Positions 45,801 to 48,800 of a stretch of 64,000 bases of DNA are shown piece after piece (the stretch's first letter is position 1; the number at the start of each line of letters is the position of its first letter). This DNA is from Saccostrea cucullata. Lineage: Eukaryota. The notes below the pieces were generated by a model. The model did no database searches. It worked only from the letters and a program-made list of their open reading frames with translations, and was not told the DNA's origin. Where the stretch lies: assembly GCF_032062105.1 (NCBI RefSeq), contig NW_026937075.1:372001-436000 (forward strand), read 5' to 3'. A program made the translations under genes and the position numbers.

Positions 45801-48800
45801 CCTCAATTGAATCAGCTGTTTCATTGACACATTCCAATAACTTAAGAATCTCTGAGTCAATTAGTAAATTACCATGGGTAACTGGACCACTAGCAGCTGT
45901 TCCATAGCCATGACTCTCCTGGTTCTTTATTATTTCTTTTAGTGAGTGCTGCTGGCTCACCTCCTTGGGATCAACTATTCCAGGCACTAGATCAATAAGT
46001 AAATCACCACAGGTAACTTCACCACTAGCAGCTGTCGTTTCAGTGCCATGATGATACTTCTGATTCTTTATTACTTCAGTGTCTTTTGATGATTCCCCAT
46101 AGTATTCTTTCTTAGCATTATTTGTTCGGGTATCATACCCAATCAAATCTGTACTGTCAATTTCTATTAGTAAATCCTCATAAGTCACTTCATCAATAGA
46201 CATTCCTCCACTATTTTGCACCATCAGCTTCTTCAAACTTTCTTGGCCTGTATCAGATTCTAACTCAATAACCTCATGTAAAACTTGTAAGCCTGTCTTG
46301 TCCAGGTGACTTTGATCTTTTATACCTTGGTCTTCACAGCAGACACTCTCCAGGGCCCACTGCTCACCTTGTTGGTTTCCTTGATAACATCTGTCCTGGG
46401 ACCAAACTTTAGTCTGGGGATTCAGTGTGTATTGGCTTTCTGGTGTTGGCTGGATATCTGGAGTAAGATCCTGGTTCTGATCCAGTGTCACATGACCTTG
46501 TGTTTTGCTTGGCCCGGATGTCGACATTCTGCAATCCAAAACTGAACTGTCACCATCAGCTTCTAATAGCTGTGAAAAAAGTTCATCAGTGATTGTGTCT
46601 GTGGTGGATTGATCTTCCTGTGCCTCTTTTTCTCTTTCATATTTTCTTGGTTTCTCTGTCAGGTCTGCTTCTAATAAACCAGGAAAATCCTGATTACTTC
46701 TTGGTGCCATGGCCTTTTTCATGCTCTGTGATTTAGTTGTCCCAATATGCAAGATGCCAGCTTTTTTAAAATCATATTTATCTGGGAAATTCTGAAAGTC
46801 TGTTGACTGAAGGTGTACAGGACCTGAAGAAAACAGAGATAGAAGGGTAATGAACATCAACTATTACTTTTAATAACTTAATCACATACTTTATGTCCTA
46901 GGTTCAAATTATTTAGAATTTTATTTTACTTGTGGTAAAAAGGGGATGAACAGTGTTTTCTGAAAAAAAAATTTAATAGGTTATTCTCTCTATCTCTATT
47001 CATATTAGAGAATTGGTTCTTTTATTTATCAGTAGAGAATCAATTTCATCGCAATGTGAAAACTACCTTGTGGATATATTCCAAATTTGTCCATCTTTCC
47101 ATAATATTGTGATGCATTCCTTTCCCCTGACAAAAGATGCCCTATGTTGCTGAGTGGTAGGTCGGGGTTAACATACACCTTTTTTTCTCGCTGTGAAACT
47201 TTTACATTATCTTTCTGTGGAACTGTCATTGTAATTGTACCATTACTCTCTCCTGATGCAAAGAAACTCATTTTATAGCTGTAAAAAATTAGATACAAAA
47301 TTGTTACTTTAACTCCACGAGACCAGTGTAGCATATTTTGATACCCCTAAATTGTAACAGGAAAGGAGAAAATGTATGGCTGGACCGGGAATCGAACCCG
47401 GGACCCCTGCATCTCTAGTCAGGTGCTCTATCAACTGAGCTATCCAGGTCGATATCCACGGCCCAAACCATTACATTCCTCCCTCCTTAAATTGTCTTCG
47501 CCCTCGAAGACACAACCCAAGTTCTTATTACCCCTGGCAGGACTTTCACCTGCAAGTCCAGGGGTGGTCAATGGCACCAAATCTGTAACAGGAAAGGAGA
47601 GAATGTATACTTCGAACCCGGGACCCCTGCATCTCTAGTCAGGTTCTCTACCAACTGAGCTATCCAGGCCGATATCCACGGCCCAAACCATAACAAAATA
47701 TTGAACGTAGAATCAACATACATGTATCAATAGTATGGTTATAGTATAATAATTGATCCTGGATTCAAGATATTATAGTAAGGAAATGTGCCTCCCTCCT
47801 CCATTCTTATTACCGGTATTTGAGGTGGACAAAACTGGACATGAAGAGCACCTCAATTTATCCTACTAAGTTACTGTAAACGTATTACATTTGGCGGTGT
47901 ATTCTTTTTAGCGTCTTCGGAACACAACAACCGCTAAATCAAGTACAACACTAAATGTCTCGCAACTATACACATAATGCGCTAAATCAAATCTACGCTA
48001 ACTTATTCAAAATTCAATTTCCGCAATATATCGTACACGCTAAATTTAATACATTTACAGTAAGTTTGAGGTTCAAGATATTAAGAAGATTTTAAGTATT
48101 TTTCTTATGTATAAAACTTTTATCATCCATTGTGGCTTAACCCTATATAAAGGGGTCAAGATTTAAACAAATTTGAATCTTTACTGTGTAAAGAAACAAA
48201 ATATGAACATTTTTCATTTTCCTAGTTCTGCATGTGGTTGTTGATCACAAAGAGTGGATGACAGCAAGACCATGGGGAGAAGTGTAAGAAAGGAAAGAGT
48301 TGAAGCAAAAACTCAACTAGTGTAAGAATACTCAACAAATGGAGAAACTGAGAACAGAATTTAGGGAAGCCAACATACAATTGCGACCCAATTCTCCCCA
48401 AGGAGCGAACAGAAATAAGTCAAGTCAGTCAAAGTAGTCATTGAGAAGGTTTTTGAAAGGTGTCATTCAATGTTCTTAAATTCTTAATTGTCCTCCCCTC
48501 CCTGGAAGAGGATTAGGCCTCTTATTTGAATAAACTAATAAATACCCTTTCCTCAATGATGCTTTGTGACAAATTAGGTTGAAATTGTCATAATTGTTCT
48601 CTGGAAGAAGTAAAAAAATGTTAGAAGTTTACAAACAGATGAACACCCAACATCTCAAGTGAGCTAAACCCATAGAAAATGTTACAAGAGATCCACAGGC
48701 CCTGATGGTTACCCGATTATCATAAAAGTTTCTGAGGCTATGTCCAGCACTCTGGGTCTACTCAGGTCTAATGTAATCTTATAACAAGTGTGTTTGTGAC

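Follow-up and report, generated by a model that had tools for sequence, protein, structure and literature searches.

The window analyzed here is a 64,000-nucleotide stretch of the Saccostrea cucullata genome (NCBI RefSeq assembly GCF_032062105.1, contig NW_026937075.1, positions 372,001 to 436,000). It carries a miniature long terminal repeat (LTR) retrotransposon at 47353-47695, and the coordinates of this copy are given in the minus-strand reading. The element is 343 bp long and consists of a 112-bp 5' LTR, a 108-bp interior and a 123-bp 3' LTR (Table 1). An earlier reading made from the letters of the window alone (the sequence-only reading) had reported the two TG...CA LTRs, the GATT-spaced primer-binding site (PBS), the polypurine tract (PPT), the interior and the 4-bp target-site duplication (TSD), and all of these coordinates are correct. 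The element codes for nothing, and the sole open reading frame (ORF) across it is an 88-amino-acid artefact on the plus strand.

Each LTR contains a tRNA-like sequence. The A box and B box motifs were read in both LTRs, as was previously stated, and the 11 bp missing from the 5' LTR correspond to the 3' half of the T arm, a loss that had also been noticed. Rfam RF00005 matches the 3' LTR at 47377-47449 (minus strand) with 42.8 bits against a threshold of 29 (E = 1.6e-7), and only the 3' LTR, not the 5' LTR, scores as a tRNA. ARAGORN reports the same span with a four-base 'agag' anticodon. Four bases mean an 8-nt anticodon loop, and the sequence is therefore a pseudo-tRNA, which is what the sequence-only reading had expected. 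The T run downstream of the tRNA-like part is mutated from TTTT to TTCT in the 5' LTR of the window copy.

Kojima (2024; PMC10886601) described two groups of TRIMs (terminal-repeat retrotransposons in miniature), Helenus and Ajax. Helenus elements have a tRNA-like sequence in their LTRs and occur in fungi, plants and animals. Pteriomorphian bivalves hold 51 Helenus families with 4-bp TSDs, and published family lengths range from 311 to 1263 bp (PMC10886601). Helenus-2_SaGl from Saccostrea glomerata has a 123-bp LTR, a 108-bp interior, a total length of 354 bp and a 4-bp TSD (PMC10886601 Table S1, Data S1). The window element shows the defining Helenus features: paired TG...CA LTRs, a short non-coding interior, a length below ~1.3 kb, a tRNA-like part with A and B boxes, and a PBS and PPT at the LTR borders. 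Its family is multi-copy and has 4-bp TSDs.

The window copy and Helenus-2_SaGl have the same LTR ends, tRNA-like part, GATT spacer, hairpins and PPT, and the same tRNA-His PBS with a one-base bulge. The window copy differs in being decayed, with the 11-bp deletion in its 5' LTR, a private PBS change and 8 LTR differences. Compared with the published consensus by eye, a limit that counts against the assignment, it is ~96-97% identical. The published sequence differs from the window 3' LTR at 4 of 123 sites (11, 27, 45 and 66) and from the window interior at 4 of 108 sites (12, 28, 54 and 91). At seven of these eight sites the commonest letter among the other genome copies is the published letter, although at LTR site 11 the published A prevails by plurality only (32 of 64 copies). 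The exception is interior site 91, in the closest run of positions. Contigs from DNA runs give the same picture. At LTR position 101, a biased sample of copies has G (40) more often than the published A (24), a preference that may reflect another Saccostrea-like species or a subfamily. Copies ~98% like the published Helenus-1_SaGl LTR are present in the genome as well (L070), and the closeness of these two families points to a genome of S. glomerata or of a near relative.

These results identify the window element, with a probability of about 0.92, as a member of the Helenus-2_SaGl family or its counterpart in a very close relative, that is, a two-LTR TRIM with a proposed life cycle based on RNA polymerase III (Pol III) and Gypsy proteins. 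The sequence-only reading had recognized a complete non-autonomous LTR retrotransposon, and the multiple copies, paired LTRs and differing 4-bp TSDs bear this out. It had also named Ajax as the tRNA-bearing element, which was mistaken: Ajax is the 5S rRNA type, found in nemerteans, and Helenus is the tRNA type. A match to a catalogued family had been expected to remove the novelty and leave the structure, and both parts hold. This kind of element, the Pol III-type TRIM or TRIMp3, was described in 2024 and the family is in the data of PMC10886601; the window element is not new because its family is already catalogued for a rock oyster as Helenus-2_SaGl. The window copy confirms the Helenus-2 type in one more assembly. 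What is added beyond PMC10886601 is modest and consists of a helper candidate, a variant with a 33-nt tRNA copy and a second tRNA-complementary box.

The Crassostrea families Helenus-2_CGi, Helenus-2C_CGi and Helenus-4_CVi share with the window copy the tRNA-like part, the 4-bp TSD and the interior order of tRNA-His PBS, hairpin, box, hairpin and PPT, and differ in their LTR starts and tails, their length (357-436 bp) and a PBS without the bulge. Ajax is an LTR element of miniature size too, and its LTRs hold a promoter of Pol III type, but it differs in its 5S rRNA-derived part, 5-bp TSDs and tRNA-Leu PBS, and its known hosts are two nemerteans (PMC10886601). An Ajax identity was ruled out for the window element, in which Rfam finds a tRNA and no 5S rRNA and the TSD is 4 bp, not 5. 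A tRNA-derived short interspersed nuclear element (SINE2) is ruled out by the paired LTRs, PBS and PPT. The biv-TRIM element (PMC6934838) is a different family without a PBS. Cassandra (Kalendar 2008) follows the same concept, tandem multi-LTR arrays included, but contains 5S rather than tRNA sequence, occurs in plants, has 5-bp TSDs and is 565-860 bp long.

The interior contains two hairpins, both of which the sequence-only reading had proposed. In the hairpin adjoining the PPT, GTCTTCG/CGAAGAC is replaced by GTCTTTGG/CCAAAGAC in a Helenus-1-type interior, with compensating changes on both sides, and pairing is kept again in scallops as GTGTTCG/CGAACAC. The GGACT/AGTCC stem given for the first hairpin rests on a change private to the window copy, and the stem at the level of the family is CCCCTGG...CCAGGGG instead. 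Fold z-scores of the interior hairpins are weak (-1.6 to -2.3).

Table 1. Parts of the Helenus-2 copy in the window, and multi-LTR arrays of the same family elsewhere in the genome
Feature	Position	Strand	Remarks
TSD, 5' side, ATTT	47696-47699	-	Identical four bases at 47349-47352
5' LTR, 112 bp, TG...CA, runs TGTTATGG...TGTTACA	47584-47695	-	tRNA-like part truncated by 11-bp deletion
Interior, 108 bp	47476-47583	-	Between the two LTRs
PBS TGGTGCCATTGACC	47566-47579	-	4-nt spacer GATT separates it from the 5' LTR
First interior hairpin, outer stem CCCCTGG/CCAGGGG, inner stem CAGG/CCTG	47531-47565	-	Fold weakly better than shuffles
Box GAACTTGGGTTGT, interior positions 60-72	47512-47524	-	12/13 bases are the complement of tRNA-His 44-56
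Second interior hairpin GTCTTCG-AGGG-CGAAGAC	47494-47511	-	Pairing kept across families
PPT AAGGAGGGAGGAA	47476-47488	-	Adjoins 3' LTR; end TTTAAGGAGGGAGGAA kept in 40/41 interiors
3' LTR, 123 bp, full length, TG...CA, runs TGTAATGG...TGTTACA	47353-47475	-	Sequence reading
tRNA-like sequence in 3' LTR, 8-nt anticodon loop	47377-47449	-	Rfam and ARAGORN
A box TAGCTCAGTTGGTAGAG in 3' LTR	47426-47442	-	Normal tRNA spacing to B box
B box GGTTCGATTCC in 3' LTR	47389-47399	-	Normal tRNA spacing to A box
TTTT run, likely Pol III terminator (putative function)	47369-47372	-	4 nt past tRNA-like part; kept in other LTRs
TSD, 3' side, ATTT	47349-47352	-	Identical four bases at 47696-47699
LTR array	L009:807-1854		TSD CATG
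LTR array	L010:1269-2079		TSD CAGA
LTR array	L008:1273-1854		TSD TAAT
LTR array	L011:1278-1854		TSD ACTG

Genomic copies and age of the window insertion

The genome searched was the window's own (1.17 Gb), and the copy counts are first-look candidates and lower bounds. At least 2128 candidates were found for the whole element and at least 2302 when the LTR was searched by itself. A standard copy measures 354 bp (123 + 108 + 123). Perfect 4-bp TSDs flank 15 of 23 full-ended copies or arrays and comprise 14 different sequences, and in several of the remaining full-ended copies the TSD matches at 3 of 4 bases. This is the picture of many copies with different TSDs that the sequence-only reading had anticipated; a single copy or an absence of TSDs, which it had named as pointing away from a retroelement, was not what the search returned. 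The depth of DNA runs from two organisms rises from ~3-300 to 10^4-10^5 exactly at the element edges. With this copy number and these edges, chance is no explanation for the element. The window element owes its insertion to an integrase that duplicates 4 bp of the target.

The two LTRs of a copy differ from each other at 0-8 sites (mean 2.9, median 2), with no differences in three copies, and LTRs of different copies differ by a mean of 4.4. The minority letters T11, G66 and A101 are common to both window LTRs, indicating that both derive from one template. Among the 22 two-LTR copies sampled, the window copy is the most diverged: besides the 11-bp deletion, its LTRs disagree at 8 of 112 aligned bases. 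A CpG in its PBS has undergone a private change from G to A; the base is G in 40 of 40 other interiors. The family form of the PBS, TGGTGCCGTTGACC (TGGTGCCGTTGACCAC), is found in 29 of 41 interiors. The window copy is an old, dead insertion, and it is ordinary for the genome carrying it. Helenus copies inflate tRNA gene predictions, and masking them in annotation is advised.

A scan of ~339 kb for solo LTRs yielded a single doubtful candidate that lacks a TSD. Arrays in which 3-5 LTRs alternate with interiors have a 231-bp period and a single 4-bp TSD each. In certain arrays the Helenus-2 LTRs are separated by interiors of both Helenus-2 and Helenus-1 type. Such a mixture cannot come from simple unequal crossing-over confined to one insertion, and it points to other copies, or cDNA, as partners in recombination. 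Tandem arrays of TRIMs were already known from Cassandra, LTR-11_DR and biv-TRIM (PMC6934838 for biv-TRIM).

Priming by tRNA-His and a second complementary box

The sequence-only reading had likened the PBS to a tRNA-His 3' end, and it is complementary to the 3' end of the host tRNA-His(GTG), with the private G-to-A change and the one-base bulge of the family. Genes for this tRNA lie at L031 and L035 and end in ...ACAACCCAGGTTCGAATCCTGGTCACGGCA. The last 22 bases of tRNA-His have 16 exact matches in the genome, of which at least 3 are retroelement PBSs and not genes because an encoded CCA follows. The Helenus-2 PBS matches tRNA-His over 9 bases, has one extra T and then matches again over GACCA. 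The same bulged pairing is drawn in PMC10886601 Fig. S2C. A tRNA-His variant with the extra base of the PBS was not found in the genome. The perfect 18-nt tRNA-His PBS including CCA, TGGTGCCGTGACCAGGAT, occurs 170 times in the genome, and both Helenus-1-type copies and several families of LTR retrotransposons carry it.

A variant copy bears on the use of this primer. The copy at L033:1371-1691 (G000:C6263) is a complete two-LTR Helenus-2 element with the TSD AACT and a 75-bp interior. The first 33 nt of this interior are perfectly complementary to tRNA-His 44-76, CCA included, and are fused at the GAACCTGGGTTGT box. Standard copies do not have the middle of this stretch, so the 33 nt must derive from the tRNA itself. 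As read from its sequence, the variant is direct evidence that tRNA-His is the primer and that copying ran on into it past the usual 18 nt. Another short copy resembling it lies at G000:C19070:665555-665873. In a copy of an unrelated LTR family at L032:1497-1540 (G000:C6189), compared with L065, the PBS is extended to ~32 nt of tRNA-His complement, so read-through into the primer tRNA is not peculiar to Helenus in this genome.

The point of fusion in the variant is the box in the middle of the interior. PMC10886601 makes no mention of this second box. It pairs in sequence with the variable loop and T arm of tRNA-His, and shuffled interiors reached a 12/13 match to tRNA-His in 3 of 2000 cases. 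The box reads 11-13 of 13 in the published consensuses of His-type Helenus from Crassostrea, Saccostrea and the scallops Pecten, Argopecten and Mizuhopecten, families in which different hairpins separate it from the PBS. These observations raise the possibility that the PBS of His-primed bivalve Helenus has two parts, the usual PBS and the 13-nt box GAACYTGGGTTGT at 47512-47524, a suggestion that we make tentatively and consider unlikely. The two primer sites would hold tRNA-His across the first interior hairpin. Equally, the box may have been left behind by tRNA read-through in an ancestor. In the bipartite PBS of Ty3 and in retroviral contacts with the primer T arm, a second stretch of element RNA is complementary to the T arm region. 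The putative second primer contact of Helenus-2 differs from the Ty3 arrangement in its position in the middle of a 108-nt interior and in having no counterpart in the candidate helper described below.

Transcription, candidate helper and alternative readings

In the proposed life cycle, RNA would be made from an internal promoter, the A and B boxes in the tRNA-like part of the 5' LTR. Transcription would pass the TTTT in the 5' LTR and stop at the one in the 3' LTR, giving an RNA of ~310 nt with an R region of ~80 nt (the tRNA-like part), a U3 of ~26 nt and a U5 of ~16 nt. Proteins of an autonomous Ty3/Gypsy element would package this RNA, reverse-transcribe it with tRNA-His as the primer and integrate the product. 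All of 64 other LTRs retain the TTTT run 4 nt past the tRNA-like part, and the run recurs in the published Crassostrea and Helenus-1_SaGl consensuses, though not in every Helenus group. The element is represented in contigs from RNA libraries, some of them spanning U5, the PBS and the interior.

The best helper candidate in the genome is a Ty3/Gypsy family with shared PBS, PPT and LTR ends. It has LTRs of ~1204 bp and a length of ~8-9 kb that varies among copies (L067, L069, L071, L073 and L074). Its PPT and LTR start read TTTAAGGGGGGAGGAA followed by TGTAGTGGTTTAG, compared with TTTAAGGAGGGAGGAA followed by TGTAATGGTTTGG in Helenus-2, and its LTR end is CTTCCGGTTACA compared with TTTCCTGTTACA. 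The PBS is a perfect 18-nt match to tRNA-His. The exact PPT of this Gypsy family is printed for Helenus-2C_CGi in the data of PMC10886601. Pfam gives clear protease, reverse transcriptase, RNase H and integrase matches in the Gypsy order, with one copy having such a pol ORF, and capsid-like matches (SCAN, PNMA and Ty3 capsid) that are weak and below the Pfam cut-offs. Some copies have LTRs ~99% alike and long open frames, and others are broken. The single Gypsy copy with both ends available has a candidate TSD of low complexity, TTTT, and a mutated LTR end. A chimera at L070:2045-2620 (G000:C3871) consists of the last 110 bp of the Gypsy LTR, a TAATTT spacer and a perfect tRNA-His PBS joined to a Helenus-1 interior and Helenus-1 LTRs, which is what template switching between co-packaged RNAs would give. 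Animal Helenus had been linked to Gypsy by PBS similarity only (PMC10886601). The sequence-only reading had proposed a search for autonomous elements with the same termini and PBS, and this family is a candidate for that role. We place the odds that it is the helper of Helenus-2 at about even, judging from the shared sequences. The Gypsy side of the earlier proposal of a Gypsy/BEL parasite with a Pol III promoter gains from the shared PPT, LTR ends and tRNA-His PBS; the Pol III side is as putative as before.

Several observations weigh against this life cycle. Pol III transcription of Helenus-2 is something that we infer from its sequence. TTTT is also present in the 5' LTR, and Pol III read-through would be needed to pass it. 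The depth ratio of element to flank in the RNA libraries, taken from assembled contigs without ends, is close to that in the DNA runs, and the RNA-library signal could therefore come from intronic RNA or from DNA carried over. Neither the second tRNA-His box (searched with up to 2 mismatches) nor the Helenus interior hairpin is present in the Gypsy copies. At least 6 other LTR retrotransposon families in the genome have a tRNA-His PBS, and a second Gypsy-like family (L045/L072), whose 3' LTR lies beyond the stretch examined, has a similar LTR end, ...CTTCCTTACTACA, and may compete with the helper candidate.

The most serious alternative accepts the same TRIM and differs in the role of its tRNA-like part, which would be a passenger, the relic of a tRNA-derived SINE in an ancestral LTR, with the RNA made by Pol II or by read-through from a host gene. 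The TTTT a few bases past the tRNA-like part in every LTR speaks for it, since a Pol III stop would often be expected in the 5' LTR; the window copy is also on the same strand as a large ORF, and PMC10886601 itself calls the use of Pol III by Helenus unproven. Against these points, no part of the LTR is as well conserved as the tRNA-like part between the Saccostrea and Crassostrea families, whose LTR starts differ, and the spacing of its A and B boxes is normal. Element lengths also lie within the short range expected for Pol III transcripts (PMC10886601), and the 5S part is the source of transcription in the 5S-bearing counterpart Cassandra, according to the account relayed in PMC10886601. 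A passenger role is doubtful on this evidence, and an internal Pol III promoter remains the preferred reading.

Two further alternatives fare much worse. The 231-bp period of the arrays could suggest that the window element never integrated as a retroelement and arose instead as a local duplication, or as two units of a tandem repeat built on a tRNA pseudogene or SINE. This is highly improbable given that perfect, differing 4-bp duplications bound 15 of 23 units or arrays, that all units end in TG...CA with the PBS and PPT exactly at the LTR borders, and that the arrays carry a single TSD, as if grown from one insertion. The idea that the LTRs are working tRNA genes spread by the element draws on the 3' LTR passing the Rfam tRNA threshold and is more improbable still. 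The anticodon loop has 8 bases, ARAGORN assigns a four-base anticodon without an isotype in both the window copy and another copy, and the acceptor stem contains mismatches. Kojima likewise considers it unlikely that Helenus encodes a functional tRNA (PMC10886601).

Neighboring features in the window

An unrelated high-copy repeat occupies 47839-48243, just upstream of the Helenus element. It has inverted arms at 47868-47896 and 48038-48066 that are 86% complementary, and DNA runs cover it at a depth of 10^3-10^5, the edges being sharp near 47871/47872. Its probable identity is a DNA element resembling a miniature inverted-repeat transposable element. An ORF of 516 amino acids rich in Q, E, T and D lies at 45310-46860 on the minus strand, the same strand as the Helenus element, and is probably a large exon of a host gene. 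Part of this ORF is covered by a contig from a run, guessed to be RNA, of a related organism.

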